Shown one piece after another: positions 9,771-51,411 of a DNA stretch of 64,000 bases. Both the position numbers and the translations under genes were made by a program. Positions within the stretch are counted from its first letter, which is position 1, and every line of letters starts with the position of its first letter. Location: contig NIVC01003872.1 in assembly GCA_002269645.1 (NCBI GenBank), positions 1-64,000 on the forward strand. The letters are read 5' to 3'. The notes below the pieces were generated by a model that was not told the DNA's origin, made no database searches, and was given only the letters and a program-made list of their open reading frames with translations. The DNA comes from Macrostomum lignano. Taxonomy: Eukaryota.

Positions 9771-9945
9771 ATGCACACAAAGCCTACCCAGCTTTCAGAG
9801 CCTGGTTATTTGACAACGCTTGGAGCAGTTTATGAGGCATTTAACAGGCCAAATCCGACGACTACCCTCTGTCTCAGTAATGTGCGTTTTGTTTTATGCA
9901 CCCCAACCCCGCCCGGTTGCATATGCGCACAAGTAAAGCTTTAGC

Positions 9946-11570
9946 TCAGTCAGTCAGCTCATTCAGCTCAGTGAGTCAGCTCATTCAGTCAGCTCAGTCA
10001 GTCAGCTCATTCACATACATGCGCAACAGTCGGCCGAGTCGGCCGATCCGGCCGACCGATTTGGCGGCCAACCAAGGAAGTCGCAAAAATGCCCACCCAA
10101 AAAAACACCCAAGTAGTAGTACTAAGTAGCTGACGAGGCATTTTGACTTAATAAGACAGTCATAGTTACTCCTGCCGTTTACCCAAAGTTGCGTTAATTT
10201 TGCTTTAGGGTTTTTTTACATGTAAGTCGCATTTTTGGCCAAAAACTATGTCGCATTTTGTTAAAACTAAGTCGCACGGCCGACCGAATTTTAGAGGTTG
10301 CGCATGTATGCTCATTCAGCTCAGTAAGTCAGCTCATTCAGTCAGCTCAGTCAGTCAGCTCATTCAGTCAGTGAGTCAGCTCATTCAGTCAGCTCATTCA
10401 GTCAGTGAGTCAGCTCATTCAGCTCAGTGAGTCAGCTCATTCAGTCTGCTCATTCAGCTCAGTGAGTCAGCTCATTCAGTCAGCTCAGTCAGTCAGCTCA
10501 TTCAGCTCAGTGAGTCAGCTCATTCAGTCAGCTCAGTCAGTCAGCTCATTCAGTCAGCTCATTCAGTCAGTGAGTCAGCTCATTCAGTCAGCTCATTCAG
10601 TCAGCTCATTCAGTCAGTGAGTCAGCTCATTCAGTCAGCTCAGTCAGTCAGCTCATTCAGTCAGCTCATTCAGCTCAGTGAGTCAGCTCATTCAGCCAGC
10701 TCATTCAGTCAGTGAGTCAGCTCATTCAGTCAGTGAGTCAGCTCATTCAGTCAGTGAGTCAGCTCATTCAGTCAGTGAGTCAGCTCAGTCAGTCAGTCAG
10801 TGAGTCAGCTCATTCAGTCAGTGAGTCAGCTCATTCAGTCAGTGAGTCAGCTCATTCAGTCAGTGAGTCAGCTCAGTCAGTCAGTGAGTCAGCTCATTTA
10901 GTCAGTGAGTCAGCTCATTCAGTCAGTGAGTCAGCTCATTCAGTCAGTGAGTCAGCTCATTCAGTCAGTGAGTCAGCTCAGTCAGTCAGTGAGTCAGCTC
11001 AGTCAGTCAGTGAGTCAGCTCATTTAGTCAGTGAGTCAGCTCATTCAGTCAGTGAGTCAGCTCATTCAGTCATTGAGTCAGCTCATTCAGTCAGTGAGTC
11101 AGCTCAGTCAGTCAGTCAGTCAGCTCAGTCAGTCAGTGAGTCAGCTCATTCAGCTCAGTGAGTCAGCTCAGTCAGTCAGCTCAGTCAGTCAGTGAGTCAG
11201 CTCATTCAGTCAGTGAGTCAGCTCAGTCAGCTCAGTCAGTCAGTCAGTGAGTCAGCTCAGTCAGTCAGTCAGTGAGTCAGCTCATTCAGTCAGTGAGTCA
11301 GCTCAGTCAGTCAGTCAGTGAGTCAGCTCATTCAGTCAGTGAGTCAGCTCAGTCAGTCAGTGAGTCAGCTCAGTCAGCTCAGTCAGTCAGTCAGTGAGTC
11401 AGCTCAGTCAGTCAGTCAGTGAGTCAGCTCATTCAGTCAGTGAGTCAGCTCAGTCAGTCAGTCAGTGAGTCAGCTCATTCAGTCAGTGAGTCAGCTCAGT
11501 CAGTCAGTGAGTCAGCTCAGTCAGTCAGTGAGTCAGCTCATTCAGTCAGTGAGTCAGCTCATTCAGTCAG
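9946..11570. repeat. Complex TCAG-based satellite (GTGAGTCAGCTCATTCAGTCA), interrupted by a MITE
   Basis: Tandem TCAG/TGAG/CTCA modules; insertion at 10014-10310. Confidence 0.95.
10014..10310. mobile_element. hAT-type MITE, copy 1 (297 bp), containing an antisense 28S rRNA-like segment
   Basis: Perfect 14-bp TIRs CATACATGCGCAAC...GTTGCGCATGTATG; 8-bp TSD CTCATTCA (10006-10013 and 10311-10318); subterminal AAGTCGCA-like repeats; related copy at 38977-39259. Confidence 0.9.
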
Positions 11571-13631: not shown

Positions 13632-16600
13632 TCAGGCGAAGCTGCAGTCCCCCAGGGTGTCTATGGAGGAGGACAGGCAGGACACGCAGGACACCCCGGA
13701 GTCGTCGGTGACGCCGGTGCCCTCGCCGCAGGGCCGGCAACGGCGCGCGATCTCGAGGAACTCGATGAGGTCCTGAGACAGGTCCGGGTAGGACCAGGCC
13801 CGGTTCAGGCCGGAGGGCGAGCGCAGCTCGGGACCGGTGGGCAGCAGCAGGGCGGGGCCGTGGCGGCCGGCCTGCAGGCAGGACTTGTTCCGCTCCCAGC
13901 GCACCGTCACGAACGGGTTGTGCTTCATGCCGGGGTTCCAGCAGCGCTGCTGGTGCCGCCGCTCCTGCCAGCTCGCGTCCAGCCGTCGCTGCTCCACCAG
14001 CTCGTCCGCTTCGATGTCGGCGTCGGCCGTGGAGGCGACGTCGCGAACCGTCTCTACGGCGACGCCGGCCTCCAGCTTGTCGAGCAGGCGCATCAGGGCG
14101 CCGGCCAGGTCGGCGAAGCTGGGCCGCACCGCCGGCTCCTGGCTGCAGGCCGACAGCGCCAGCTGCAGCAGCGGCCGCGGGCAGTCGGGCGGCACCAGCG
14201 AGGACTCCAGCGCGGCGGCGTCGATGCCGAAGTCCGGCAGGCGCGGCAGGAAGTCGGGGTCGGCGGGCAGGCGGGTGAGCAGCTCGCACAGCACAATGCC
14301 GTAGCTGAACACGTCAGCCTTGGTGCTGAAGCCGCAGCCGCGCATGCACTCGGGCGCCATCCAGAACGGGCTGCCGACGCACTCCAGCAGGCGCTGCGTG
14401 GCGTAGCGGGGCATCTTGATGGCCAGGCCGAAGTCCGCCACCACCGCCTGGTAGGGCCGGGCACCGCCCGCGTCAGTGCGGATCAGGATGTTCTTCGAGG
14501 CGATGTCGCGGTGGAAAAAGCCCTGCGAAGGAGGGGGGCGTATCTGGTCACTCAATACTGCGTAATCACTCGTCTGGTCACTCAATACTGCGTAATCACT
14601 CGTCTGGTCACTCAATACTGCGTAATCACTCGTCTGGTCACTCAATACTGCGTAATCACTCGTCTGGTCACCCAATACTGCGTAATCACTCGTCTGGTCA
14701 CTCAATACTGCGTAATCACTCGTCTGGTCACCCAATACTGCGTAATCACTCGTCTGGTCACTCAATACTGCGTAATCACTCGTCTGGTCACTCAATACTG
14801 TGTAATCACTCGTCTGGTCACTCAATACTGTGTAATCACTCGTCTGGTCACTCAATACTGTGTAATCACTCGTCTGGTCACTCAATACTGCGTAATCACT
14901 CGTCTGGTCACCCAATACTGCGTAATCACTCGTCTGGTCACTCAATACTGCGTAATCACTCGTCTGGTCACTCAATACTGTGTAATCACTCGTCTGGTCA
15001 CTCAATACTGTGTAATCACTCGTCTGGTCACTCAATACTGTGTAATCACTCGTCTGGTCACTCAATACTGCGTAATCACTCGTCTGGTCACTCAATACTG
15101 TGTAATCACTCGTCTGGTCACTCAATACTGTGTAATCACTCGTCTGGTCACTCAATACTGTGTAATCACTCGTCTGGTCACTCAATACTGTGTAATCACT
15201 CGTCTGGTCACTCAATACTGTGTAATCACTCGTCTGGTCACTCAATACTGTGTAATCACTCGTCTGGTCACTCTAATTGCCAATGAAACAGATATGGTCA
15301 TTATATTCGATAATGAGACATATTTGGTCACTCGAATCAACAATGAGACCCATCTGGCACTCCAACAATCAACAATGAGACTCATCTGGCACTCCAACAA
15401 TCAACAATGAGACCCATCTGGAACTCCAATCAACAATGAGACCCATCTGGAACTCCAATCAACAATGAGACCCATCTGGCACTCCAACAATCAACAATGA
15501 GACCCATCTGGCACTCCAACAATCAACAATGAGACCCATCTGGCACTCCAACAATCAACAATGAGACCCATCTGGCACTCCAACAATCAACAATGAAACC
15601 CATCTGGAACTCCAATCAACAATGAGACCCATCTGGCACTCCAACAATCAACAATGAGACCCATCTGGCACTCCAACAATCAACAATGAGACCCATCTGG
15701 CACTCCAACAATCAACAATGAAACCCATCTGGAACTCCAATCGACAATGAGACCCATCTGGAACTCCAATCAACAATGAGACCCATCTGGCACTCCAACA
15801 ATCAACAATGAGACCCATCTGGAACTCCAATCGACAATGAGACCCATCTGGCACTCCAACAATCAACAATGAGACCCATCTGGAACTCCAATCGACAATG
15901 AGACCCATCTGGCACTCCAACAATCAACAATGAGACCCATCTGGAACTCCAATCGACAATGAGACCCATCTGCCAACACACCTGTCCGTGCACATAGGCC
16001 ATGGCCCGGGCAACATCCAGCGCCAGTCCCAGCCGCACCCTCCAGCTCAGCCGCCTGCCGGGCTCTGCCAGCAGCTGCTCCAGACTGCCGCCCTCGATGT
16101 AGTCGAACAGGCAGTGCAGCCGGCCGCCGTGGATGCAGACGGCGTGGTAGCGCAGCACGTTGGGGTGACTGAGCTTGGACATGATCTCGTGCTCGCGATA
16201 GGCAGAGCGCTGGTTCGTCTCCCCGTTCATCTTCAGGGCCATCTGACGGCCGCTGCGCTCCAGGGTCACTCGGTACACGTTGGAGAAGAAGCCCTTGGCC
16301 AGCAGCTGCACGCTGCTGAAGTCCTGCAGGCTGTAAATCTCCTTCACCGCCAGCAGCAGCGCCGTGTTCAGCCCCGAGCGGGAGCGGCGGCGCTTGCCGG
16401 GGGGCGGCGAGCAGCGGAGGAGGTCCACAGCCACCGCCTTGCTCAGCCCGTTCAGGCGCAGCCGCTGAAGGCGCTCCGACAGCGAGCTGTCGACCTAGCG
16501 GGTGATGGGAAGAGGAAATGGTGAAGGATCGTGCAGATTAAAGGAACGCGGATTATCGAAATAAATATAGAGGATTTGTTGGACTAGCACCGTGGATTGT

Positions 16601-19600
16601 CGGACTAAAGCACCGTGGATTGTCTGACTAAAGCACCGTGGATTGTCTGACTAAAGCACCGTGGATTGTCGGACTAAAGCACCGTGGATTGTCTGACTAA
16701 AGCACCGTGGATTGTCGGACTAAAGCACCGTGGATTGTCGGACTAAAGCACCGTGGATTGTCGGACTAAAGCACCGTGGATTGTCGGACTAAAGCACCGT
16801 GGATTGTCGGACTAAAGCACCGTGGATTGTCGGACTAAAGCACCGTGGATTGTCGGACTAAAGCACCGTGGATTGTCGGACTAAAGCACCGTGGATTGTC
16901 GGACTAAAGCACCGTGGATTGTCGGACTAAAGCACCGTGGATTGTCTGACTAAAGCACCGTGGATTGTCGGACAAAGCACCGTGGATTGTCGGACTAAAG
17001 CACCGTGGATTGTCGGACTAAAGCACCGTGGATTGTCGGACTAAAGCACCGTGGATTGTCGGACTAAAGCACCGTGGATTGTCGGACTAAAGCACCGTGG
17101 ATTGTCGGACTAAAGCACCGTGGATTGTCTGACTAAAGCACCGTGGATTGTCGGACTAAAGCACCGTGGATTGTCGGACTAAAGCACCGTGGATTGTCGG
17201 ACTAAAGCACCGTGGATTGTCGGACTAAAGCACCGTGGATTGTCGGACTAAAGCACCGTGGATTGTCGGACTAAAGCACCGTGGATTGTCGGACTAAAGC
17301 ACCGTGGATTGTCGGACTAAAGCACCGTGGATTGTCGGACTAAAGCACCGTGGATTGTCGGACTAAAGCACCGTGGATTGTCGGACTAAAGCACCGTGGA
17401 TTGTCGGACTAAAGCACCGTGGATTGTCGGACTAAAGCACCGTGGATTGTCGGACTAAAGCACCGTGGATTGTCGGACTAAAGCACCGTGGATTGTCGGA
17501 CTAAAGCACCGTGGATTGTCGGACTAAAGCACCGTGGATTGTCGGACTAAAGCACCGTGGATTGTCGGACTAAAGCACCGTGGATTGTCGGACTAAAGCA
17601 CCGTGGATTGTCTGACTAAAGCACCGTGGATTGTCGGACTAAAGCACCGTGGATTGTCGGACTAAAGCACCGTGGATTGTCGGACTAAAGCACCGTGGAT
17701 TGTCGGACTAAAGCACCGTGGATTGTCTGACTAAAGCACCGTGGATTGTCGGACTAAAGCACCGTGGATTGTCGGACTAAAGCACCGTGGATTGTCGGAC
17801 TAAAGCACCGTGGATTGTCGGACTAAAGCACCGTGGATTGTCGGACTAAAGCACCGTGGATTGTCGGACTAAAGCACCGTGGATTGTCGGACTAAAGCAC
17901 CGTGGATTGTCGGACTAAAGCACCGTGGATTGTCGGACTAAAGCACCGTGGATTGTCGGACTAAAGCACCGTGGATTGTCGGACTAAAGCACCGTGGATT
18001 GTCGGACTAAAGCACCGTGGATTGTCGGACTAAAGCACCGTGGATTGTCGGACTAAAGCACCGTGGATTGTCGGACTAAAGCACCGTGGATTGTCGGACT
18101 AAAGCACCGTGGATTGTCGGACTAAAGCACCGTGGATTGTCGGACTAAAGCACCGTGGATTGTCGGACTAAAGCACCGTGGATTGTCTGACTAAAGCACC
18201 GTGGATTGTCGGACTAAAGCACCGTGGATTGTCGGACTAAAGCACCGTGGATTGTCGGACTAAAGCACCGTGGATTGTCGGACTAAAGCACCGTGGATTG
18301 TCGGACTAAAGCACCGTGGATTGTCGGACTAAAGCACCGTGGATTGTCGGACTAAAGCACCGTGGATTGTCGGACTAAAGCACCGTGGATTGTCTGACTA
18401 AAGCACCGTGGATTGTCGGACTAAAGCACCGTGGATTGTCTGACTAAAGCACCGTGGATTGTCGGACTAAAGCACCGTGGATTGTCGGACTAAAGCACCG
18501 TGGATTGTCGGACTAAAGCACCGTGGATTGTCGGACTAAAGCACCGTGGATTGTCGGACTAAAGCACCGTGGATTGTCGGACTAAAGCACCGTGGATTGT
18601 CGGACTAAAGCACCGTGGATTGTCGGACTAAAGCACCGTGGATTGTCGGACTAAAGCACCGTGGATTGTCAGACTAAAGCACCGTGGATTGTCGGACTAA
18701 AGCACCGTGGATTGTCTGACTAAAGCACCGTGGATTGTCGGACTAAAGCACCGTGGATTGTCGGACTAAAGCACCGTGGATTGTCTGACTAAAGCACCGT
18801 GGATTGTCGGACTAAAGCACCGTGGATTGTCGGACTAAAGCACCGTGGATTGTCGGACTAAAGCACCGTGGATTGTCGGACTAAAGCACCGTGGATTGTC
18901 GGACTAAAGCACCGTGGATTGTCGGACTAAAGCACCGTGGATTGTCGGACTAAAGCACCGTGGATTGTCGGACTAAAGCACCGTGGATTGTCGGACTAAA
19001 GCACCGTGGATTGTCGGACTAAAGCACCGTGGATTGTCGGACTAAAGCACCGTGGATTGTCGGACTAAAGCACCGTGGATTGTCGGACTAAAGCACCGTG
19101 GATTGTCGGACTAAAGCACCGTGGATTGTCGGACTAAAGCACCGTGGATTGTCGGACTAAAGCACCGTGGATTGTCGGACTAAAGCACCGTGGATTGTCG
19201 GACTAAAGCACCGTGGATTGTCTGACTAAAGCACCGTGGATTGTCGGACTAAAGCACCGTGGATTGTCGGACTAAAGCACCGTGGATTGTCGGACTAAAG
19301 CACCGTGGATTGTCGGACTAAAGCACCGTGGATTGTCGGACTAAAGCACCGTGGATTGTCGGACTAAAGCACCGTGGATTGTCGGACTAAAGCACCGTGG
19401 ATTGTCGGACTAAAGCACCGTGGATTGTCGGACTAAAGCACCGTGGATTGTCTGACTAAAGCACCGTGGATTGTCGGACTAAAGCACCGTGGATTGTCGG
19501 ACTAAAGCACCGTGGATTGTCGGACTAAAGCACCGTGGATTGTCGGACTAAAGCACCGTGGATTGTCTGACTAAAGCACCGTGGATTGTCGGACTAAAGC

Positions 19601-21097
19601 ACCGTGGATTGTCGGACTAAAGCACCGTGGATTGTCGGACTAAAGCACCGTGGATTGTCGGACTAAAGCACCGTGGATTGTCGGACTAAAGCACCGTGGA
19701 TTGTCGGACTAAAGCACCGTGGATTGTCGGACTAAAGCACCGTGGATTGTCGGACTAAAGCACCGTGGATTGTCGGACTAAAGCACCGTGGATTGTCGGA
19801 CTAAAGCACCGTGGATTGTCGGACTAAAGCACCGTGGATTGTCGGACTAAAGCACCGTGGATTGTCGGACTAAAGCACCGTGGATTGTCGGACTAAAGCA
19901 CCGTGGATTGTCGGACTAAAGCACCGTGGATTGTCGGACTAAAGCACCGTGGATTGTCGGACTAAAGCACCGTGGATTGTCGGACTAAAGCACCGTGGAT
20001 TGTCAGACTAAAGCACCGTGGATTGTCGGACTAAAGCACCGTGGATTGTCTGACTAAAGCACCGTGGATTGTCGGACTAAAGCACCGTGGATTGTCGGAC
20101 TAAAGCACCGTGGATTGTCGGACTAAAGCACCGTGGATTGTCGGACTAAAGCACCGTGGATTGTCGGACTAAAGCACCGTGGATTGTCGGACTAAAGCAC
20201 CGTGGATTGTCGGACTAAAGCACCGTGGATTGTCGGACTAAAGCACCGTGGATTGTCGGACTAAAGCACCGTGGATTGTCGGACTAAAGCACCGTGGATT
20301 GTCGGACTAAAGCACCGTGGATTGTCGGACTAAAGCACCGTGGATTGTCGGACTAAAGCACCGTGGATTGTCGGACTAAAGCACCGTGGATTGTCGGACT
20401 AAAGCACCGTGGATTGTCGGACTAAAGCACCGTGGATTGTCGGACTAAAGCACCGTGGATTGTCGGACTAAAGCACCGTGGATTGTCGGACTAAAGCACC
20501 GTGGATTGTCTGACTAAAGCACCGTGGATTGTCGGACTAAAGCACCGTGGATTGTCGGACTAAAGCACCGTGGATTGTCGGACTAAAGCACCGTGGATTG
20601 TCGGACTAAAGCACCGTGGATTGTCAGACTAAAGCACCGTGGATTGTCGGACTAAAGCACCGTGGATTGTCGGACTAAAGCACCGTGGATTGTCTGACTA
20701 AAGCACCGTGGATTGTCGGACTAAAGCACCGTGGATTGTCGGACTAAAGCACCGTGGATTGTCGGACTAAAGCACCGTGGATTGTCGGACTAAAGTACCG
20801 TGGATTGTCGGACTAAAGCACCGTGGATTGTCGGACTAAAGCACCGTGGATTGTCAGACTAAAGCACCGTGGAATGTCGGACTAAAGCACCGTGGATTGT
20901 CGGACTAAAGAGCCGCAGATTTCCAGTATCACAGAGCAGCTGCTCACCTGAATATTGGGCAGCCTAGACTTGCAGGTGAAGCAGATCTCGGTGGGGTCCA
21001 CATTATCGATATCCTTGGGCTGCTCGCAGCCGCAGCCGCCGCCGCAGGCGCCCAACTCGTGCAGCTGTTGTTGCTGAAGCGGTTTGCCAGACGACAT
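13632..21097 (-). CDS. TESK: TESK/LIMK-family (TKL group) protein kinase, TESK1/2 or Drosophila cdi-like, 517 aa
   Basis: Exons 21097-20948, 16494-15982 and 14522-13632, all phase 0 with GT..AG introns. Motifs KGFFSNVY, MALKMN, HPNVLRY, HRDIASKN, DFGLA, VGSPFWMAPE and PADPDFLPRLPDFG. The last motif resembles the PADPDYLPRTEDFG signature I recall for TESK/LIMK. Confidence 0.9.
14543..15272. repeat. 30-bp minisatellite, about 24 copies, TESK intron 2
   Basis: Unit CTCAATACTGYGTAATCACTCGTCTGGTCA. Confidence 0.97.
15340..15972. repeat. 29/32-bp minisatellite, TESK intron 2
   Basis: Unit AATGAGACCCATCTGGMACTCCAA(CAA)TCRAC. Confidence 0.95.
16580..20910. repeat. 23-bp minisatellite, about 188 copies, filling TESK intron 1
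   Basis: Unit ACTAAAGCACCGTGGATTGTCGG, nearly invariant over 4.3 kb. Confidence 0.98.
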
Positions 21098-21849: not shown

Positions 21850-23780
21850 GGACAAGGGGGACAGGGAATCAGAGGGGACAGAGGGGACAGGGGAGCAGAG
21901 GGGACAGGGGAGCAGAGGGGACAGGGGAGCAGAGGGGACAGGGGAGCAGAGGGGACAGGGGAGCAGAGGGGACAGGGGAGCAGAGGGGACAGGAAAGCAG
22001 AGGGGACAGGGGAGCAGAGGGGACAGGGGAGCAGAGGGGACAGGAAAGCAGAGGGGACAGGAAAGCAGAGGGGACAGGGGAGCAGAGGGGACAGGGGAGC
22101 AGAGGGGACAGGGGAGCAGAGGGGACAGGGGAGCAGAGGGGACAGGGGAGCAGAGAGGACAGGGGAGCAGAGGGGACAGGGGAGCAGAGAGGACAGGGGA
22201 GCAGAGAGGACAGGGGAGCAGAGGGGACAGGAAAGCAGAGGGGACAGGGGAGCAGAGGGACAGGGGAGCAGAGGGACAGGGGAGCAGAGGGGACAGGGGA
22301 GCAGAGGGGACAGGGGAGCAGAGGGGACAGGGGAGCAGAGGGGACAGGGGAGCAGAGAGGACAGGGGAGCAGAGAGGACAGGGGAGCAGAGGGGACAGGA
22401 AAGCAGAGGGGACAGGGGAGCAGAGGGGACAGGGGAGCAGAGGGGACAGGGGAGCAGAGGGGACAGGAAAGCAGAGGGGACAGGGGAGCAGAGGGACAGG
22501 GGAGCAGAGGGGACAGGGAGCAGAGGGGACAGGGGAGCAGAGGGGACAGGGGAGCAGAGGGGACAGGGGAGCAGAGGGACAGGGGAGCAGAGGGGACAGG
22601 GGAGCAGAGGGGACAGGGGAGCAGAGGGGACAGGGGAGCAGAGGGGACAGGGGAGCAGAGGGGACAGGGGAGCAGAGGGGACAGGGGAGCAGAGGGGACA
22701 GGGGAGCAGAGAGGACAGGGGAGCAGAGAGGACAGGGGAGCAGAGGGGACAGGAAAGCAGAGGGGACAGGGGAGCAGAGGGGACAGGGGAGCAGAGGGGA
22801 CAGGGGAGCAGAGGGGACAGGAAAGCAGAGGGGACAGGGGAGCAGAGAGGACAGGGGAGCAGAGGGGACAGGGGAGCAGAGGGGACAGGGGAGGAGAGGG
22901 GACAGGGGAGCAGAGAGGACAGGGGAGCAGAGAGGACAGGGGAGCAGAGGGACAGGGGAGCAGAGGGGACAGGGGAGCAGAGGGACAGGGGGGCAGGGAA
23001 TCAGAGGGGACAGGGGGGCAGGGAAGCAGAGGGGACAGGGGAGCAGAGGGGACAGGGGGCAGGGAATCAGAGGGGACAGGGGGGCAGGGAAGCAGAGGGG
23101 ACAGGGGAGCAGAGAGGACAGGGGAGCAGAGGGGACAGGGGAGCAGAGGGGACAGGGGAGCAGAGGGGACAGGAAAGCAGAGGGGACAGGGGAGCAGAGG
23201 GGACAGGGGAGCAGAGAGGACAGGGGAGCAGAGGGGACAGGGGAGCAGAGGGGACAGGGGAGCAGAGGGGACAGGGGAGCAGAGGGGACAGGGGGGCAGG
23301 GAATCAGAGGGGACAGGGGAGCAGAGAGGACAGGGGAGCAGAGGGGACAGGGGAGCAGAGGGGACAGGGGAGCAGAGGGGACAGGGGAGCAGAGGGGACA
23401 GGAAAGCAGAGAGGACAGGGGAGCAGAGGGGACAGGGGAGCAGAGGGACAGGGGAGCAGAGGGGACAGGGGGCAGGGAATCAGAGGGGACAGGGGGCAGG
23501 GAAGCAGAGGGGACAGGGGATCAGAGGGGACAGGGGGGCAGGGAATCAGAGGGGACAGGGGGGCAGGGAAGCAGAGGGGACAGGGGAGCAGAGGGGACAG
23601 GGGAGCAGAGGGGACAGGGGAGCAGAGGGGACAGGAAAGCAGAGGGGACAGGGGAGCAGAGGAGACAGGAAAGCAGAGGGGACAGAAGGAGACAGGGGAG
23701 CAGAGGGCAGGGGGACAGGGGAGCAGAGGGCAGGGGGACAGGGGGACAGGGGAGCAGGGCAGGGGGGCAGGGGGGACCAG
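21850..23780. repeat. 17-bp polypurine G-run minisatellite (GAGGGGACAGGGGAGCA), intergenic
   Basis: Over 100 units with variants; source of the 742-aa and 696-aa pseudo-ORFs. Confidence 0.96.
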
Positions 23781-25761: not shown

Positions 25762-28700
25762 TCAGCAGTGCGTGGCGGCCTGGTGCAGCTGGTAGGTGAG
25801 CGAGCTGAAGCCAGGCCTGTCCGCCCGCGCCTGGGCCCAGCAGGCCCGCATCAGAGCCCACACATTGTCTGGCGCTCTGTCCGGCCTGGGCAGCAGGCTG
25901 GGCGGCTCCTGCAGCTTCATGTCCCACACCTGCTCAACTGAGTAGCCGGTCCACGGCTGCTCGCCCATGCTGAACAGCTCCCACAGCAGCACGCCGAAGG
26001 CGTACACGTCCGACTCCGGGTAGAAGCGGCTCTCGCGCACGGTCTCGGGCGCCAGCCAGCGCACGGGCAAGCACTCCGACCCCGACACCACGTAGGCCGC
26101 CCGGTTGCCCAGCGGCAGTTTGCGGCACATGCCGAAGTCGGCCAGCCGGATATCGTAATCGGATGTGACCAGGATGTTGCGGCTGGCCAGGTCCCTGAAC
26201 ACCAGGCCCCGCTTGCTGATGTAGCTCAGCGCGTTCGCCACCTGCGAGCCCATGCGCAGCAGGTCGGCCAGCTGCAGCGGCCGCAGCTGCGACTCGCCCG
26301 GCGCTGCCGCCGAAGGCACCGTCGCAGCCTCGGCAGAAGTGCCGGCCACGGAGGTCGTGAGTTCGATAGCCTCGGAATTGGCGGCCGGGTCAGCTGTAGG
26401 CCGGCCGTTGGGAACGGCCGAGTGCTGCTCCGGCTGGCCGAACTTGCCTTTGGCCGAGTTGCGCAGCAGCGTCTGCAGATCGCCGAACTCGCAGTACTCC
26501 ACCAGCAGGCAGAACGGCCGCGTGCTGGCGCAGATGCCGAACACCTGCGAGGTGTTTTGCAGTGGAGATGAATGCTCACTCTTGGGTGGGATCAGCTTTA
26601 TGAGCATGGGACTTAATATTCCTGCATCATGTATATTTATCCCACTGCTCAGTTTCCCCTGCCCATCTCACTGCTCAGCCTCATCAATGCTCCATCTCAC
26701 TGCTCAGCCTCATCAATGCTCCATCTCACTGCTCAGCCTCATCAATGCTCCATCTCGCTGCTCAGCCTTATCTCATTGCTCAGCCTCATCAATACTCCAT
26801 CTCACTGCTCAGCCTCATCAATGCTCCATCTCACTGCTCAGCCTCATAAATACTCCATCTCACTGCTCAGCCTCATCAATACTCCATCTCACTGCTCAGC
26901 CTTATCTCATTGCTCAGCCTCATCAATACTCCATCTCACTGCTCAGCCTCATAAATACTCCATCTCACTGCTCAGCCTCATCAATGCTCCATCTCACTGC
27001 TCAGCCTCATCAATACTCCATCTCACTGCTCAGCCTTATCAATGCTCCATCTCACTGCTCAGCCTCATCAATGGGCCATCTCACTGCCCTTATCAATCAG
27101 TGCAGTTCGAATGCAGCAAGAACAGGAGTCAGGCAGAATAGCAGCAACTATTTGTCAGTGAGTATATTTACACAGCGCAATGCAAGAATAAGTATTGTGC
27201 AAGTTTATTTTCAGTCAGGACTGTGCAATAATAAATCTGCCTTGTGCAGCAACTGATGCAAATCTACTAAGGCTGCACTGTTTAAAACCTGCGGCTGTTT
27301 ACAGGGCGCACAAAAGAGCCGATGGCAGATGCCCTGACAAGCGCATAAACTGCGCAGGCCCCAAGCATCAACAAGAGGGTCAAGCCAGATCTATTTTTAG
27401 CACAGCACGCGTACTGAATTAAACACTGGAAACTGGTCAGGGGCACAGCACCGCACAGACTTGCATCCGCGTGCGAGAAACGGAAGTTCGATGTTTATGA
27501 GCGGCAAGAGATTGTGGCAAGCTATCTGAGGATGAGATATTCCATAGCAGAATGTGGGGATATTCTATGGCAGAATGTGGGGATATTCCATAGCAGAATG
27601 TGGGGATATTCCATAGCAGAATGTGGGGATATTCCATAGCAGAATGTGGGGATATTCCATAGCAGAATGTGGGGATATTCCATAGCAGAATGTGGGGATA
27701 TTCCATAGCAGAATGTGGGGATATTCCATAGCAGAATGTGGGGATATTCCATAGCAGAATGTGGGGATATTCCATAGCAGAATGTGGGGATATTCCATAG
27801 CAGAATGTGGGGATATTCCATAGCAGAATGTGGGGATATTCCATAGCAGAATGTGGGGATATTCCATCGCAGAATGTGGGGATATTCCATAGCAGAATGT
27901 GGGGATATTCCATAGCAGAATGTGGGGATATTCCATAGCAGAATGTGGGGATATTCCATAGCAGAATGTGGGGATATTCCATAGCAGAATGTGGGGATAT
28001 TCCATAGCAGAATGTGGGGATATTCCATAGCAGAATGTGGGGATATTCCATAGCAGAATGTGGGGATATTCCATAGCAGAATGTGGGGATATTCCATAGC
28101 AGAATGTGGGGATATTCCATAGCAGAATGTGGGGATATTCCATAGCAGAATGTGGGGATATTCCATAGCAGAATGTGGGGATATTCCATAGCAGAATGTG
28201 GGGATATTACATAGCAGAATGTGGGGATATTCCATAGCAGAATGTGGGGATATTCCATAGCAGAATGTGGGGATATTCCATAGCAGAATGTGGGGATATT
28301 CCATAGCAGAATGTGGGGATATTCCATAGCAGAATGTGGGGATATTCCATAGCAGAATGTGGGGATATTCCATAGCAGAATGTGGGGATATTCCATAGCA
28401 GAATGTGGGGATATTCCATAGCAGAATGTGGGGATATTCCATAGCAGAATGTGGGGATATTCCATACCAATGATGCTCCATCAGGACTGGGCATACAAAT
28501 GGCACACAGGCAGCGGGCCCTGAGCAAGCAGCAGCTCACCTGCATCACATATCGGTGCTCCATGCCCAGCAGCAGCTCAGCCTCGGAGAAGAATGACTCC
28601 ACAATCTGGTCATCGGCGGTCTCATCCAGCACTTTGAGCGCCACCAGCTTGGGCATATCGGGCCTGGCCTCCTTGTACTTGGTGGTCTCAACCAGGTGCA

Positions 28701-31622
28701 CGGTGAAAAATGCGCCCTTACCGATCATCTTGCCCAGATCGGCGAAGTCGTCGTGCGAGTAGGCTAGCCGCTCGAGTCTTCGAAGGTCGAAACGGAATGA
28801 GGATGCGTTCTCAGAGTTCTCAACATTGATTTTTAATATATTACTAATAAATTCGGCACATTTTAAACCACGGGTCAATAACAGCTGCTATATTCATGCA
28901 TTTCTACTGCAGGTTCAACTTCCAGTAGTGCAATATGAAAATTGCCAGTAAAACAAATGGAAACTGAGTGGCTTTTTAGGGCGTCTAAACAGAGCCAAAA
29001 GCCTTAAATGGACAGTTTCTAGGAAACAGTCGCACAAGAGCCGGCTAAAAATAAACCCATTGCACATGCCTAATTTGAAGCCTGTTTTTTAATTCCCAGA
29101 GAGTAATAAGAGGCAGATAAAATGCAGAAGCTTGGCTCGCTGCCAAATTAAGTCAGGAGGGGGGAATCTCGGGGAAGGCTCAAGCAGGGACCACCCGCGA
29201 TGAGCTGCTCTGAGTCCGCTGTGTGCACTGAGATAAGCGCTATCAGAGCGGCCCCAGGGTCTCTTCCAAGAGCAGCAGAAGCCCCTAGCGGTTAGTTACA
29301 AGCCATGTCTCCGAGCAAAACCGCGCCCAAAATCAGTGCACCCAGTTCCTTGAGGATTTTTATACGCAAACTGCAAAGTGCTCCCCTGGGGCAGGTAACT
29401 TTTGAAGGTCGGTTCGGTTCGCAGGCTTGAAGACTTGCTACTCAGCTCGTACTGCAGAATAAAATGCATCTTTTAGCTTTTTAACTCAGTCCCATCGTTT
29501 TCAACACCTTCAGCTTATTGTGAGCTCCGTGTCTCGTGTGCAATCGGGGGAATTCTAAGGGCCTCAGAGACGCAAGCATGTTGCGCAGTTCATGAAATCG
29601 CTTCTTCAGAAAGCCAGCATCAACCAACTTCAGTTATTAGCAAGATTAAAAATGCAAACATGAGATTGGGTCTTCAAGTTTTCCTATTCGAATTCTACAA
29701 AGTTTATCTTTGACTCCCATCAATGAAGAACCCCACACTGACACAGCTGCACTCATTTCCATAAGCAGGCTAGAATCCAATTCGCTCCGTATCCAAGCAG
29801 GCTGAGCAGCGGCTGAAGTGGCCTCGCTTATGCCCCCCCCCCCTGCTCAAAGTGCTAATAAGCCAGCGAACTCTGGGGCTGCCTGACTGCGCTGCACTGC
29901 TACCGGCCTCACTTCATCACTTTACTCGAGCCCAGCCTCCTACAGCCCGTGCACCTGGCTCTGCTTCATCAAAGCCTCTCTGACCTCAGCGCTATTATCT
30001 GCAGCTCTCATTGTCATCATTGCAAAGCTAATTTTTTCTCTCTTCAATTCTAAAATGCGTTGACCCGCAAAGAATTGCAAAGCGGCTCACATTGCAGCTG
30101 GCGGCTGCGCCAGGCATTTCAGTCAGATTTCAGCTGTGCGACTGAGCACTGCTCATGCCAACTCAGCTGATCACCAGCTGCTGTGTCTGACCTCTCAGCC
30201 AGCCCTATCCCCTGTCTAACCCACCCTATCCTCTTGTCTAACCCACCCTATCCTCTTGTCTAACCCACCCTATCCTCTTGTCTAACCCACCCTATCCTCT
30301 TGTCTAACCCACCCTATCCCCTGTCTAACCCACCCTATCCTCTTGTCTAACCCACCCTATCCTCTTGTCTAACCCACCCTATCCTCTTGTCTAACCCACC
30401 CTATCCCCTGTCTAACCCACCCTATCCCCTGTCTAACCCACCCTATCCTCTTGTCTAACCCACCCTATCTACCATGTCTAACCCACCCTATCCTCTTGTC
30501 TAACCCACCCTATCCTCTTGTCTAACCCACCCTATCCTCTTGTCTAACCCACCCTATCCCCTTGTCTAACCCACCCTATCTACCATGTCTAACCCACCCT
30601 ATCTACCATGTCTACCCACCCTATCTACCATGTCTAACCCACCCTATCCCCTTGTCTAACCCACCCTATCCCCTTGTCTAACCCACCCTATCTACCATGT
30701 CTAACCCACCCTATCTACCATGTCTAACCCACCCTATCTACCATGTCTACCCACCCTATCTACCATGTCTAACCCACCCTATCTACCATGTCTACCCACC
30801 CTATCTACCATGTCTAACCCACCCTATCTACCATGTCTAACCCACCCTATCCCCTTGTCTAACCCACCCTATCTACCATGTCTAACCCACCCTATCCCCT
30901 TGTCTAACCCACCCTATCTACCATGTCTAACCCATCCTATCTACCATGTCTAACCCACCCTATCCCCTTGTCTAACTCACTCTTTCCCTCTTGTCTAACC
31001 ACACTATGCCCTTGTCTAAGACCTAGAATTTCACGGCGGGCAGAGTGAGAGCTGCCCACCCGCAGTCCAATACTAGTCTCTTAGAAGTCCATGACGGGCA
31101 CAATTCAGCTCCGGGGCTTGTGACCCACCTTGAGGCGACAAGTGCATTCTTTTCTAGGAAAGGAGCGAGGTTCCCAGAGTTGGAGTGCCTGGAGTGCCAG
31201 CCCGAGAATCTGCGCACCAATCAGCCGTCAGATTTCCTAGAAAGGCTGCAGATCCAACAGGCCCAGAAATACCGCAGCAGCTTTTGTTCATTCCGCCCTG
31301 CATAGAGTATTAGAATGTCAGTCTGCCCTGTATAGAGTATTAGAATTAATGTCCGATTGCCCTGCAGAGCCATTCCACAGCACTCACTTCGGGTAGGTTT
31401 TGGCCAGGTGGGTCTTCTGTCCGAATTTCACGTTGCGCTGGATGATCATGTTGGGGTCGCCCGGGTCGCCTGACAGCAGCTGGTGGCTCTGGGCCAGGCT
31501 GACCGACTCCTCACACTGGTCCTGCGGGGTGGGACTGGCTGCTGAGGACTGGCTACCTGAATGGCAGACAGGCAGACAGACAAGCAGAGAGACAGACGAC
31601 AGACAGAAAGACAAACAGACAC

Positions 31623-31657
<35 letters not shown>

Positions 31658-34600
31658 CTCAGTACTTGATCAGGGATTTATTACCCCTCGCGGGTCAGCA
31701 TAGAAGCTGCCTTGAGCCACAACAGACGCGAGGATTTATTACCCCTCGCAGGTCAGCATGGAAGCTGCCTTGAGCCACAACAGACGCGAGGATTTATTAC
31801 CCCTCGCAGGTCAGCATGGAAGCTGCCTTGAGCCACAAACGACGCGAGGATTTATTACCCCTCGCAGGTCAGCATAAAAGCTGCCTTGAGCCACAACAGA
31901 CGCGAGTATTTATTACCCCTCGCAGGTCAGCATAAAAGCTGCCTTGAGCCACAACAGACGCGAGGATTTATTACCCCTCGCAGGTCAGCATGGAAGCTGC
32001 CTTGAGCCACAACAGACGCGAGGATTTATTACCCCTCGCAGGTCAGCATAAAAGCTGCCTTGAGCCACAACAGAAGCGAGGATTTATTACCCCTCGCAGG
32101 TCAGCATAAAAGCTGCCTTGAGCCACAACAGACGCGAGGATTTATTACCCATCGCAGGTCAGCATAAAAGCTGCCTTGAGCCACAACAGACGCGAGGATT
32201 TATTACCCCTCGCGGGTCAGCATGGAAGCTGCCTTTAGCCACAACAGACGCGAGGATTTATTACCCCTCGCAGGTCAGCATGGCAGCTGCCTTTAGCCAC
32301 AACAGACGCGAGGATTTATTACCCCTCGCAGGTCAGCATAAAAGCTGCCTTGAGCCACAACAGACGCGAGGATTTATTACCCCTCGCAGGTCAGCATAAA
32401 AGCTGCCTTGAGCCACAACAGACGCGAGGATTTATTACCCCTCGCAGGTCAGCATAAAAGCTGCCTTGAGCCACAACAGACGCCAGGATTTATTACCCCT
32501 CGCAGGTCAGCATGGAAGCTGCCTTGAGCCACAACAGACGCGAGGATTTATTACCCCTCGCAGGTCAGCATGGAAGCTGCCTTTAGCCACAACAGACGCG
32601 AGGATTTATTACCCCTCGCAGGTCAGCATAAAAGCTGCCTTGAGCCACAACAGACGCCAGGATTTATTACCCCTCGCAGGTCAGCATGGAAGCTGCCTTG
32701 AGCCACAACAGACGCGAGGATTTATTACCCCTCGCGGGTCAGCATGGAAGCTGCCTTGAGCCACAACAGACGCTCAACAGACGGCAGACAGACAGCAGAC
32801 ACATAGACATACAGAAACCAACCTTGGTGCTGCTCTTTGCCACATTTCTCCTATGCAGCATGATTCCGAGGATGATGCAGCACAGCAGGATCACGAAGGC
32901 CACAGCGGCAACAATGACGGCAGTCCTTATGGGGTCGGACATGCCTAGGCCGGACAAGCCGAGCGGCAGCTGGTCCTCCGGACACTCCAGCACCGGACAG
33001 GTGATGAAAAACCTTTGGGGGAGTCGACAGTTAAGAATTGAGTTAAGAGGGAAGAGGTAAGATAGAAAAGCGCAGCGCCAAATCTTCACCACCCTCACCG
33101 AGTGTCCGATTTGTCAACGCACGACGGCCGGGGGAACTGGGCGCCCGGGTTGCGGCACTCGCTGCCGGCGTCTCGGAGGCTGGCGAAGTAGTCAGCAGAC
33201 AGCAGGCGGTTGGCGGCGGAGCTCCACTTGGCGCAGCCGGACTGCACCGCCTGCGGGAAGGGGCGAGGAGCTGGTGTGGGTGTCTGGGTCTGCCTTCGTG
33301 GCTGTCTGTGCATCTGTAACTGCTTTTCTGTTTGTGTCTGTCTCTCTGTAGTACTTTGTGTCTGTTTGTCTGTCTCTCTGTAACATTTGTCTTTTGTACC
33401 TGTTCCTGTAATTGCTTTTGTCTGTTTGTGTCTCTCTGTAATTGCTTGTGTCTGTCTGTAACAGATTGTGTCTGTATCGACCTGTCTGTCTATATCTGCT
33501 AGCCTGGCTGTACTTGTCTGTAACTGCCTGTCTGTCTGACTGCTGTACGCGTCTCCGCCTCCGGCCCACCTCAGCTCTGTCGCTCGGCTCCCTGTAAAAC
33601 AGGCCCCGCCAGAAGTCCCTCCTGGAGAAGCAGCCTCTCGTATTGGTGCTGTCGTCGGACTCGAGCGCACCAGACGCTGGCCGCGCGTGCCGCAGCATGA
33701 CGGCCTCCAGGTCGAAACGGGCGTGACAGCCGGGCTCGGAGTCGGCGTCCGGAAAGAGCTCGCAGTCGGGGAAGCGGCGGAGCAGCTTCACCTCCGAGGA
33801 GCAGACGTGATCGCGCACCAGCAGGCAGTGCTGCCGGCAGGGCTTGTCGGAGCACAGGGCGGATGAGCACAGCAGAGCCTGCGGGGGGGAAGAATGATTG
33901 CTCAGTGAGATTGGGTCTGCTGATTGGATCAGGGAATCCAGCCTCATCATGATGGGAGTGGGATGTGGGAATCCAGCCTCATCATGATGGGAGTTGGATG
34001 TGGGAATCCAGCCTCATCATGATGGGAGTTGGATGTGGGAATCCAGCCTCATCATGATGGGAGTGGGATGTGGGAATCCAGCCTCATCATGATGGGAGTT
34101 GGATGTGGGAATCCAGCCTCATCATGATGGGAGTGGGATGTGGGAATCCAGCCTCATCATGATGGGAGTGGGATGTGGGAATCCAGCCTCATTATGATGG
34201 GAGTGGGATGTGGGAATCCAGCCTCATTATGATGGGAGTGGGATGTGGGAATCCAGCCTCATTATGATGGGAGTGGGGTCTGGGAATCCAGCCTCATTAT
34301 GATGGGAGTGGGGTCTGGGAATCCAGCCTCATCATGATGGGAGTGGGATGTGGGAATCCAGCCATATCATGATGTGAGTGGGATCTGAGAATCCAGCCAC
34401 ATCATGATGGGAGTGGGATCTGAGAATCCAGCCTCATTATGATGGGAGTGGGGTGTGGGAATCCAGCCTCATCATGATGGGAGTGGGGTGTGGGAATCCA
34501 GCCTCATCAACACACCTGAGCCAGCGCAGTGCAGTGGGTCATGTGCGGATCGAGCACATCGGCGGAGTTGGCCGCGGCCTCGGGCAGCACCGCTGACGAG

Positions 34601-37354: not shown

Positions 37355-38976
37355 AGAGACAGCAAGTTAACGATCCGGCAGTGAGTTGCCCTGTGAGTTG
37401 ATGCAGGCCGCTCTTGCTGCTCAGCTGGCAATTTCTGGCTGAAATGGGATTTGGGAATCTAGCTGAGATTCTGCCAGGGAGTTATGAGGGGTTTGGCGCA
37501 ACCAGGTCAACCATGGCGTACCTGGAGCTGGAGCAGCAGGGGGAGCAGCAGGGGGGGGGGCAGGTAAAGAGCAGCCAACAACCCTGACATCCACCTAGAG
37601 TTGCTGTGAGAGTGTCACACATTGTTACAAGGAGGATGAAATCTCTTTTTTTAAGAGTTATATTGTTGCCAGCTTCCCAGAAATTAATGCACTAGCTGTG
37701 AGACAACTTGAGCTGCTTTTTTAGGCATGCATCCAATTTGCAATTAAACATTTTAACCAATAATATGCCCTCTGCTGACAAACTTGAGATAGCCATTCTA
37801 TGACAGTGAATGAGACTCTTCTCTTACAAAGCAGTTTTGTGAAATTTGTTAGTCAAAAGTAAGTTGTGCATATTTTTGCAGCTTGGAAACATACTTGCTT
37901 GGCTAAAGCACTGTCCCAAGATGTTCTCAGTACATTAATACCCATGCTTTTTAAGGGCGTTAATGGGAAATCAGAGGGCGCCGTGTGTCCAGATTTGCGA
38001 CTTTGTTTCTCCCAATTGTGACTTAGTTCCTCTCGATTTCAACTTATTTTCATTTTGTATATGACCTTTCTTGCCTTTTTCTCTTTTCTTCTCTTTCTCT
38101 TTCTCTTTCCTCTTCCGCTCTCTCTCTTTTCTCCCGCCTTTCTTTTCCTTTTCTCTTTCTCTCCTTTCTTTCTTTCCCCCAATTTTATTTTTTGCATTTT
38201 CGATTTTGCAACTTACCTTGGCTGGTGGCAATTTCACCTGTCTGGTTTGGATGGGTTGGACAGGTGTTGGGCATATATGATTAGTACTATTTGCTACATG
38301 CTCAAAGGAGTTAGAGAATGCTAACTAGAATTTGTCCTCAATTTTAGAAAACAAAACAAACCTCGAAGAGGATACCATTGATGAGAAATCTGTGTACAGC
38401 AAGCTGAGTTGTTGGAACAGTTGAGTCTTTTGATCATAGAAAGAAAAAATGTGTATATTCCTAAGAGCCATTTGTGAACGCATATTAATTCAGCACCATA
38501 GTCCTACCATCTACAAGTTCTTTCTATTGTCTAACACTGTCAATTTTCAAGTGTTAGCCATTTACAACAATTGTTATCAGGTCTTAGCAATGATCCTAAC
38601 CCCAAAGCTAAAAGGCTTAAAGCCTGGCTAAAGGCTAAAGCCTGCAGCTTACCAGAGTCTAAGAGGGTGGCTCTATTTGTAATTGATAAAATTTACTCTT
38701 CTAAAAAATAGAAGTTATTAGAAAGCATTTTTTGGAATTGATAGTGATATTAAAACTAATGACTTGGCCAAATGATATGTACATTTTAAATAAAATCATT
38801 ACATAGTGACTTCTAAGAGGTTGCTTAGCTTTTCTTATTCTAAAAAGTAACTTAAATGCATAAGAGCTTCATAAGCATCTCCATGACTTCAAGGAAACAT
38901 GCGTGTTTTAAACTATTATAATAAGAGAAAATTATAATATTAATTTATTAAATAACAAAGTTCTCAGCCTTCTAAA

Positions 38977-39259
38977 CATATATGCGCAACTGCTGGCCGA
39001 CCTGGCCGATCTGGCCACCGTAAATTGTGGTGGACCAGGGGTAAATCGCAAAAATGCCACCCCAAAGAATATGGACGTAGTACTAATTAGATGCCGAGGC
39101 ATTTAATATTATTAAATGATAATACAGTCATAGTTACTCCTGCCGTTTATCCAAAACTGCGTTAATTTTGCTTTAGGGTTTCTTTTGCAGGTAAGTCACA
39201 TTTTTGGTCAAAAAGTAAGTCGCATGGCTGGTGTAAATCAGGGGGGTTGCGCATGTATG
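38977..39259. mobile_element. hAT-type MITE, copy 2 (283 bp), containing an antisense 28S rRNA-like segment
   Basis: TIRs CATATATGCGCAAC...GTTGCGCATGTATG with 1 mismatch; perfect 8-bp TSD CTTCTAAA (38969-38976 and 39260-39267) in non-repetitive DNA; colinear with 10014-10310. Confidence 0.92.

Positions 39260-49923: not shown

Positions 49924-51388
<1,465 letters not shown>

Positions 51389-51411
<23 letters not shown>

Follow-up and report, generated by a model that had tools for sequence, protein, structure and literature searches.

What is a piece of 28S rRNA sequence doing inside a small transposon-like element of Macrostomum lignano, and could it still act as a target for the rDNA-specific elements that use this site? 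The question is raised by positions 10014 to 10310 of the 64-kb stretch of DNA analysed here (the window). Our preferred answer, to which we give a probability of roughly 0.7, is that the element belongs to a family of class II MITEs, most likely mobilised by a hAT transposase, in which a fragment of the host 28S gene was captured as filler or passenger.

A preliminary description of the window had recognised two diverged copies with 14-bp TIRs and 8-bp TSDs, and both copies stand up to closer analysis. The features of these copies, and of a third relative, are as follows.

10014 to 10310, plus strand: MITE copy 1, 297 bp, lying within a 21-bp minisatellite, with perfect 14-bp TIRs and an 8-bp TSD.
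10014 to 10027, plus strand: left TIR of copy 1, CATACATGCGCAAC, the exact reverse complement of the right TIR at 10297 to 10310 (14/14, 0 mismatches).
10006 to 10013 (left) and 10311 to 10318 (right): TSD of copy 1, CTCATTCA (8/8).
10078 to 10085, 10224 to 10231 and 10269 to 10276, plus strand: subterminal repeat AAGTCGCA in copy 1, with the variant ATGTCGCA near 10249.
38977 to 39259, plus strand: MITE copy 2, 283 bp, surrounded by unique AT-rich sequence.
38977 to 38990 and 39246 to 39259: TIRs of copy 2, CATATATGCGCAAC and GTTGCGCATGTATG (13/14).
38969 to 38976 and 39260 to 39267: TSD of copy 2, CTTCTAAA (8/8).
About 37960 to 38279 (right boundary approximate), minus strand: decayed third relative, with left end CATATATGCCCAAC and AAGTCRCA motifs.

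The element ends, given as CATAYATGCGCAAC ... GTTGCGCATRTATG, are flanked by duplications that are constant in length (8 bp) and unlike in sequence (CTCATTCA versus CTTCTAAA). Despite its minisatellite setting the TSD of copy 1 is genuine, because deleting the element together with one duplicate restores the register of the array: past the right-hand CTCATTCA the minisatellite continues GCTCAG..., its normal sequence after GCTCATTCA. Stops interrupt all reading frames in both copies, which are non-coding; copy 1 contains no gene, its longest stop-free frame being 67 aa. Since it has TIRs and 8-bp TSDs, encodes nothing and occurs more than once, the element is of MITE type (class II), and the presence of TIRs and perfect 8-bp TSDs at two unrelated sites supports its being a transposon. 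There is no rRNA gene within the 64-kb window and neither copy has rDNA as its insertion site.

The alignment of copies 1 and 2 covers 257 bases at 78% identity (E 9e-50) and includes perfect runs of 26 and 24 nt; CpG decay in copy 2 accounts for only 8 of the 60 differences between them. That the ends and TSDs are intact in spite of this divergence implies subfamilies that are diverged yet mobilisable, not decay following insertion. In the third relative the middle is taken up by a GA-rich microsatellite, and the 28S 5' arm (see below), a clear right TIR and a TSD are all absent from 37960 to 38279, but the score of its collinear alignment exceeds those of 300/300 shuffles. The window thus holds two good copies and one decayed one. 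Motifs resembling GGCATATATG at 40.4 and 41.8 kb were considered as elements but did not resolve into any.

The motif AAGTCRCA occurs two to three times per copy, always in one orientation relative to the element, and seven of its ten matches in the window lie inside the three copies. These motifs resemble the AAGT subterminal repeats of Hermes, whose BED domain binds AAGT-containing subterminal repeats (PMC10368747); repeats of this sort are not exclusive to hAT elements.

The 28S-like part of each good copy consists of two arms around a short core, all on the minus strand.

10121 to 10143, minus strand: 28S 3' arm of copy 1, reading AAATGCCTCGTCAGCTACTTAGT in the 28S sense and agreeing with the Rfam LSU consensus at 21/23.
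10144 to 10151, minus strand: scrambled core of copy 1, TTAAGTCA where 28S has AGGTAGCC (1/8 ungapped), at the R2 nick position.
10152 to 10184, minus strand: 28S 5' arm of copy 1, GGGTAAACGGCAGGAGTAACTATGACTGTCTTA (31/33 to the consensus).
10185 to 10200, minus strand: upstream stretch that may be a decayed continuation of the 28S piece (model 2228-2243), a weak match in a truncated-mode alignment.
39082 to 39104, minus strand: 28S 3' arm in copy 2, agreeing with the consensus at 22/23.
39105 to 39119, minus strand: core of copy 2, also scrambled and 15 nt long, TCATTTAATAATATT.
39120 to 39152, minus strand: 28S 5' arm in copy 2, agreeing with the consensus at 29/33.

The reverse complement of 10121 to 10184 aligns without gaps to positions 2244 to 2307 of the Rfam LSU_rRNA_eukarya consensus at 53 of 64 positions (binomial tail 4e-22 per placement), and 10121 to 10200 matches at 62/80, again ungapped. 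The preliminary description had given exactly this string and the same gap-free 53/64 count against a quoted 28S core; that core is identical to the printed Rfam consensus and to the 28S oligonucleotides used as R2 substrates in PMC13000458. When the 83-nt Rfam consensus was compared by BLASTN with the entire 64 kb, copies 1 and 2 were the only significant matches (E 4e-15 and 4e-9), which answers the LSU significance check that had been proposed. In cmscan both copies fall at identical model positions and on the identical strand, a narrow search giving model 2228/2244-2310 at 31.5 bits (E 1.5e-6).

Could the likeness be a chance or low-complexity match? The cmscan scores, at 9.6-31.5 bits, lie under the family gathering score of 50, with nothing at that threshold, but this is expected of a short fragment (about 64-83 nt) as opposed to a gene. 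The differences between the copies speak against chance as well. The 33-nt and 23-nt arms are 91-93% identical to 28S, and at each of the six arm positions where the copies differ, one of the two keeps the 28S base, which places the arms of the inferred ancestor at 54/56 identity to 28S. Such a pattern is as expected of true descent from 28S, and only two differences from 28S are common to both copies (G to A in GGCGGGAG and C to G in GACTC). Given the BLASTN E values, the absence of any other match in the 64 kb, the 53/64 identity, the shared model positions and the six of six differences that resolve to the 28S state, we regard chance resemblance as refuted, its probability being close to nil. 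The segment is genuinely of eukaryotic 28S rRNA origin and, as the preliminary description had proposed, spans the target region of R2, I-PpoI and Pokey. On our reading of the Rfam structure line, the 3' arm of copy 1 corresponds to helix 71 and the 5' arm to helix 69 (H69). Changes in the H69 stem are uncompensated ('v' marks in the alignment to the Rfam model), indicating that the piece is not maintained as an rRNA-like structure.

Matters are different in the core. In 28S, AGGTAGCC holds the R2 nick, which we placed between AAGG and TAGCC from the cleaved-strand oligonucleotides of PMC13000458, and adjoins the TTAA of I-PpoI and Pokey (for the Pokey TTAA, see PMC3849761). The intact cleavage and insertion core, CTCTCTTAAGG followed across the break by TAGCC, is absent from both copies and has been replaced, and neither copy matches the 15-bp I-PpoI site anywhere at better than 8-9/15. 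With its core destroyed the segment cannot function as a target for R2, I-PpoI or Pokey, and the suggestion that it might act as a decoy or landing pad for rDNA-specific elements falls accordingly. The 28S piece is most likely a passively captured passenger.

Alteration is much heavier in the core than in the arms (Fisher p=4e-6), and the core differs between the copies, with 8 nt in copy 1 and 15 nt in copy 2, neither of which is predicted by plain neutral decay. This raises the question of whether the captured piece came from, or later turned into, a target that was cleaved and mis-repaired. Either the donor rDNA unit would already have been disrupted at the R2/Pokey/I-PpoI site, leaving an insertion remnant or scar, or intact sites would have been dispersed and cut repeatedly by an rDNA-specific nuclease, with only the copies with destroyed cores surviving. 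Replacement of the 8-nt core that includes the R2 nick, between arms 91-93% identical to 28S, is what such events might leave, and cores of unlike length suggest more than one event at one spot. In copy 2 the core and the start of the 3' arm form a perfect 19-bp palindrome (39100 to 39118; self match 39118-39100), the type of junction expected where a break has been repaired through a hairpin or fold-back, whilst the core of copy 1 can be read as the native CTTAAG with a TTA duplication and small deletions. Set against this, AT-rich palindromes slip unaided and the native CTTAAG is itself palindromic, the comparison involves two copies and a single site looked at post hoc, and the 64-kb window yielded no sequence of R2, Pokey or a homing endonuclease. 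Furthermore, the decayed third copy seemingly retains AT-rich core remnants like those of copy 2, pointing to inheritance over repeated events. We therefore judge a mis-repaired target rather unlikely. Its stronger form, in which the MITE once dispersed intact R2/I-PpoI/Pokey targets and an rDNA-specific nuclease cut them again and again, leaving the differing cores as scars, strikes us as more improbable still. Were it true, the family would be a natural record of parasite activity away from rDNA, or would once have provided such parasites with additional landing pads, and if a census found the core recurrently destroyed and the arms persisting, the family would become a read-out of rDNA-specific nuclease outside rDNA.

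Which transposase moved the element? Amongst animal MITEs, 8-bp TSDs come by far most commonly from hAT elements; they are found also in P and some other superfamilies. The ends of hAT elements begin CAG or TAG (YARNG type) and those of P elements CATG. The ends described here start CATACATG and read CATAC, not CAG or TAG, a comparison that carries low weight. In hAT elements the TIRs are 10-25 bp and the TSDs 8 bp, ranges that include the 14-bp TIRs and 8-bp TSDs seen here (PMC3942097). The Ac/Hermes group prefers nTnnnnAn targets (PMC10368747); CTTCTAAA fits, whilst CTCATTCA has T at position 2 and C at position 7, so that across just two sites the preference is fully matched in one and the T at position 2 is present in both. 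A search of the 64-kb window for an autonomous partner revealed no transposase ORF and no long repeat pair with these ends.

The same element with the same passenger might thus have been mobilised by a P-type or other transposase giving 8-bp TSDs (Merlin, Zisupton or some Mutator-like elements, for example). The form of the ends, the single full match to nTnnnnAn and the lack of a hAT transposase in the window all lean this way, and we rate such an origin as a real but lesser possibility. The T shared by both TSDs, the combination of 14-bp TIRs with several short AAGT-containing subterminal repeats, which suits hAT architecture, and the general predominance of hAT as the source of 8-bp TSDs in animal MITEs point back to hAT. 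The label 'hAT-type' used in the preliminary description is therefore plausible as regards the TSDs, the short TIRs and the AAGTCRCA repeats, but sits less well with ends reading CATAC and a window lacking a transposase partner.

If the piece is neither a decoy nor an rRNA-like structure, its arms might still be kept for a function. The plus strand of the element is antisense to 28S, and transcripts or small RNAs from it might pair with rRNA or with junction transcripts of rDNA parasites; in a variant of this idea the segment could aid the element's own propagation. The internal block at 10152 to 10257, which includes the 28S 5' arm, is about 91% identical between the copies, compared with 35-67% in the subterminal regions (permutation p=0.001). 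This is the reverse of the usual MITE pattern, and constraint could conceivably lie behind it, the block being the best-conserved part of two 22%-diverged subfamilies and the copies sharing the perfect 26-nt and 24-nt runs noted above. However, the conserved block runs well past the 28S part and, with two copies, conservation is indistinguishable from shared ancestry or recombination between subfamilies. Weak plus-strand Rfam matches to C/D snoRNAs that target the same rRNA stretch (GlsR7 and snR63; E 0.8-6) lie far under threshold and rest on an antisense 12-mer only, with C/D boxes not rightly placed; we rejected a snoRNA-like reading of the antisense strand, these matches being at chance level. 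Folding brings out nothing past TIR pairing (z about -3), and a long hairpin or small-RNA precursor was likewise rejected, the fold being driven by the TIRs only. Retention of the arms for function appears improbable.

Searches outside the window added little. A pattern with both TIRs found nothing in JGI metagenomes, where a MITE-specific 25-mer had one match, on contig Ga0126337_10024160; this we rejected as a family member, as it is an orphan 28S fragment lacking TIRs. Neither the 25-mer nor a non-28S 24-mer matched the viral or prokaryotic genome collections. A protein search with the element's open frames, which are broken into stretches of 17-47 aa, was judged unsuitable because conserved words would match spurious ORFs in genuine 28S. 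Protein searches with two coding pieces of the window found only distant relatives: a kinase exon matched flea, barnacle and sea cucumber proteins at 37-40% identity at best, and an RNase H ORF reached no more than 45%, with a metagenome protein. A literature search turned up nothing relevant on either the TIR sequence or any MITE already reported to contain a 28S core.

Returning to the captured passenger, we picture the family as non-autonomous cut-and-paste elements about 280-300 bp long. A transposase acting in trans, most likely of hAT type, would make 8-bp staggered cuts and recognise the 14-bp termini and the AAGTCRCA repeats. An ancestor would have gained about 64 nt (possibly 80-100 nt) of the host 28S gene, covering helices 69-71 of domain IV, in antisense to the written orientation of the element. 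Likely routes are filler copied during gap repair after excision, or rearrangement of an element in or beside rDNA, and the piece would since have been carried as a passenger. Both 'family-wide' and 'passenger' are extrapolations from two good copies and one decayed copy. In practical terms, such copies give scattered 'LSU-rRNA' matches in repeat annotation and can mislead searches for rDNA loci, rDNA-specific elements or rRNA-derived small RNAs.

How does this element compare with known systems? The 28S part of SINE28 comes from the 3' end of 28S, not from the helix 69-71 core. This mammalian SINE is likewise a mobile element with 28S-derived body sequence (PMC10946416) but is a retrotransposed class I element, whereas the present one is class II, with TIRs and TSDs. 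In structure the closest parallels are the hAT-derived MITEs of animals, such as Mar and the BuT2-derived elements of Drosophila, which are also short and non-coding, with short TIRs, 8-bp TSDs and subterminal repeats, and are mobilised in trans (PMC3942097; PMC3517528); the present element differs in having ends without the usual hAT motif and an interior made up of an rRNA fragment in place of transposase-gene remnants. The isolated 28S piece on Ga0126337_10024160 comes from the same region, measures about 65-70 nt (model 2207 to about 2275) and also lies in a non-rDNA context, yet it resembles the MITE only over a 28-nt stretch and turned up only because that variant base was built into the search pattern.

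Pokey and mPok of Daphnia (piggyBac) are again a DNA transposon and MITEs with rDNA-derived sequence, and are linked to this 28S site (PMC3849761; PMC10946416). Pokey, however, carries IGS repeats, not 28S, makes TTAA duplications and inserts into the 28S site, whereas the present element has 8-bp TSDs, lies outside rDNA and holds a copy of the site with a destroyed core. The Cassandra and Ajax TRIMs and the 5S-derived SINEs are similarly non-autonomous with an acquired rDNA module (PMC10946416), but their modules are 5S genes kept for the Pol III promoter and no promoter or benefit is evident here. In Pack-type capture (transduplication) a host fragment is likewise amplified between transposon ends (PMC8903248; PMC13317346); such cases mostly concern plant elements with protein-coding fragments, whereas the present host is an animal and the fragment a very short one of rRNA. 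Transposons are known to capture rDNA modules, which is ascribed to modular reshuffling and mostly judged to bring the element no benefit; the only entries in the table of a 2024 review are 5S modules, SINE28 (for 28S) and Pokey with its IGS repeats (PMC10946416). The element described here adds a class II MITE to this short list of mobile elements that carry rRNA gene sequence, as a new instance of a known phenomenon.

The element is present in the window as two copies and a third, degraded family member:

10014-10310 (297 bp), MITE copy 1, left end CATACATGCGCAAC, right end its exact reverse complement
38977-39259 (283 bp), MITE copy 2, ends matching at 13/14 positions, flanked by a perfect CTTCTAAA duplication
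~37960-38279, minus strand, decayed relative with left end CATATATGCCCAAC and AAGTCRCA motifs

The 14-bp terminal repeats and 8-bp target-site duplications reported for the two copies in the preliminary description are present, the repeats matching at 14/14 and 13/14 positions and both duplications being perfect. Copies 1 and 2 have no coding capacity, with all six reading frames broken. Copy 1 sits within a 21-bp minisatellite (9943-11570), with CTCATTCA on either side as its duplication. That this duplication is an artefact of the minisatellite, possible in principle, is ruled out by the register of the array: following the second CTCATTCA the array reads GCTCAG..., which is what normally follows GCTCATTCA in the rest of the array, so that excising copy 1 with one duplicate restores the register. 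The insertion site of copy 2 is unique AT-rich DNA. Positions 38000-44000 form an AT-rich island (GC 28-33%, against ~50-67% in the rest of the window) that contains both copy 2 and the decayed relative.

Copies 1 and 2 are 78% identical (E 9e-50). Since they retain perfect duplications and intact ends despite 22% divergence, that divergence is mostly older than insertion, and they would belong to different subfamilies that were still mobilisable when inserted. Conservation along the element is uneven (permutation p=0.001, copy 1 versus copy 2), with 27/28 positions identical in the terminal repeats, ~91% identity in the internal block 10152-10257 and 35-67% identity in the subterminal regions. 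CpG decay in copy 2 makes up 8 of the 60 differences and accounts for part, though not all, of the low subterminal conservation.

The 28S origin of the internal segment was assessed against the Rfam LSU_rRNA_eukarya consensus as printed (positions 2228-2310), which agrees with the 28S oligonucleotides serving as R2 substrates in PMC13000458. The 28S core quoted in the preliminary description proved to be that of the consensus, the reverse complement of 10121-10184 was exactly the string originally given, and the 53/64 ungapped identity was reproduced (binomial tail 4e-22 per placement). When the 83-nt consensus was compared with the whole window by BLASTN, only copies 1 and 2 matched (E 4e-15 and 4e-9), with no further match below E 0.5. 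Both copies were placed by cmscan at identical model positions on the minus strand, and a narrow covariance-model search gave 31.5 bits (E 1.5e-6); as no match reached the Rfam gathering score, the segment is a fragment rather than a gene. It matches eukaryotic cytosolic LSU and, as we read the structure line given by Rfam, takes in helices 69 to 71 within domain IV. Homology possibly extends, weakly and not securely, upstream to model position 2228, perhaps to 2207 with a 10-nt deletion.

A three-way alignment of 28S and the two copies divides the segment into two arms and a core:

5' arm, 33 nt: 28S GGGTAAACGGCGGGAGTAACTATGACTCTCTTA; copy 1, 31/33; copy 2, 29/33
core, 8 nt: 28S AGGTAGCC; copy 1 TTAAGTCA, 1/8; copy 2 TCATTTAATAATATT, 15 unrelated nt
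3' arm, 23 nt: 28S AAATGCCTCGTCATCTAATTAGT; copy 1, 21/23; copy 2, 22/23

At all six arm positions that differ between the copies, one copy keeps the 28S base, giving a common ancestor with arms 54/56 identical to 28S, which is what would be expected from real descent from 28S and unlike chance resemblance. A 28S-derived fragment from the R2/I-PpoI/Pokey region does, then, reside in a real MITE. Arms and core contrast sharply (Fisher p=4e-6, copy 1). The replaced octamer holds the R2 first-strand nick, AAGG|TAGCC, whose position is given by cleaved-strand oligonucleotides (PMC13000458), and borders the Pokey TTAA (PMC3849761); neither copy contains a match to the 15-bp I-PpoI site better than 8-9/15. 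Although the segment spans this target region, it is unusable as a target, and the destroyed core contradicts the earlier proposal of a decoy or landing pad.

Two features are not predicted by plain passenger decay, namely the scrambled core and an interior better conserved than the subterminal regions. The arms are altered far less than the core, which is also scrambled in a different way in each copy; in copy 2 a perfect 19-bp palindrome, CATTTAATAATATTAAATG (39100-39118), lies exactly at the expected 28S core, and half of it is the beginning of the 3' arm. The segment may have been captured from an rDNA unit previously scarred or occupied at this site, or repeatedly cut by an rDNA-specific nuclease and sloppily repaired; together these readings are unlikely. 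Instability of the native CTTAAG palindrome is also possible, as is chance, given only two copies and a post hoc look. A functional, antisense or constraint reading of the segment appears very improbable. Both copies carry the same two changes to the stem of helix 69, which are non-compensatory, and the segment has therefore not been retained as an rRNA-like fold.

The ends of hAT elements are typically CAG/TAG-like, whereas those of the MITE read CATAC; P-element ends start CATG, and P likewise makes 8-bp duplications. hAT elements have terminal repeats of 10-25 bp and 8-bp duplications (PMC3942097), and the BED domain of Hermes binds short subterminal repeats containing AAGT (PMC10368747). 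The MITE resembles hAT in duplication length, terminal-repeat length and subterminal repeats: the octamer AAGTCRCA occurs two to three times per copy in constant orientation, 7 of its 10 matches in the 64-kb window falling within ~0.9 kb of MITE family sequence. GC-rich TCGGCCG repeats lie directly inside both ends. Set against the Hermes target preference nTnnnnAn (PMC10368747), one of the two duplications is a full match, and position 2 is T in both. The CATAC ends count against the assignment to hAT made in the preliminary description, as does the lack of an autonomous partner in the window. The assignment is plausible but unproven, and hAT is the likeliest superfamily, with a probability of roughly one half to two thirds.

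The decayed relative in the window has a collinear alignment score that exceeds those of all 300 shuffles. Its middle is a GA-rich microsatellite, and it is without the 28S 5' arm, a clear right end or a duplication. A pattern with both terminal repeats had no match in JGI metagenomes, and MITE sequence patterns had none in viral and prokaryotic collections. A MITE-specific 25-mer matched a single metagenome contig (Ga0126337_10024160); that this contig shares the G-to-A variant merely reflects the pattern used, which demanded that base. On its minus strand (1239-1303) this non-rDNA contig (42% GC) holds an orphan 28S fragment of ~65-70 nt that matches Rfam model positions 2207-2249 at 42 bits, with homology running on to ~2275 and stopping at ...ATGACT, a few bases short of the R2/Pokey site; there are no transposon ends around it and no further similarity to the MITE.

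The window also holds more than 30 minisatellite arrays (1-37000 and 50221-51857), several between or within kinase exons. Examples of these arrays, and other features of the window, are:

4-2500, minisatellite, 12 bp x208
16586-20910, minisatellite, 23 bp x188
21873-23757, minisatellite, 17 bp x112
31674-32773, minisatellite, 58 bp x19
50221-50688, (GATA)117 array
13632-16434 and 25762-28878, minus strand, tyrosine-kinase-type exons of at least two genes (Pfam PK_Tyr_Ser-Thr); best outside matches receptor kinases of flea, barnacle and sea cucumber, at only 37-40% identity, which points to a metazoan host lacking close relatives in the protein collection
57371-57856 and 63413-63910, plus strand, two paralogous ionotropic glutamate-receptor-type channel exons (Pfam Lig_chan), ~6 kb apart, which look like a tandem duplication
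53203-53928, plus strand, ORF of 241 aa whose RNase H domain is of the non-LTR retrotransposon kind; best outside match 45% identity
43735-45083, separate ~1.35-kb element with imperfect ~50-nt inverted repeats (TTTTATGGTGGGGCACAAAG... / ...CTTTTGCCCCCCACCATAAAA); no Pfam match in its ORFs

The structure of the element suggests that a transposase recognising the ends and subterminal repeats would move it in trans. The 28S piece most likely represents host sequence that an ancestral element took up, either by template switching in gap repair following excision or by rearrangement of the element within or next to rDNA, and by whichever route would then have been amplified together with it. Our literature search found no paper on a MITE with a 28S core fragment. 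A 2024 review of rDNA-derived modules (PMC10946416) lists 5S in SINEs and in Cassandra/Ajax TRIMs, a 28S module in SINE28 and IGS repeats in Pokey/mPok, and ascribes such modules to modular reshuffling, mostly with no benefit to the element. No class II MITE bearing a piece of the 28S core appears in that list; the element described here adds a new case to a known phenomenon, the presence of an rDNA module in a transposon.
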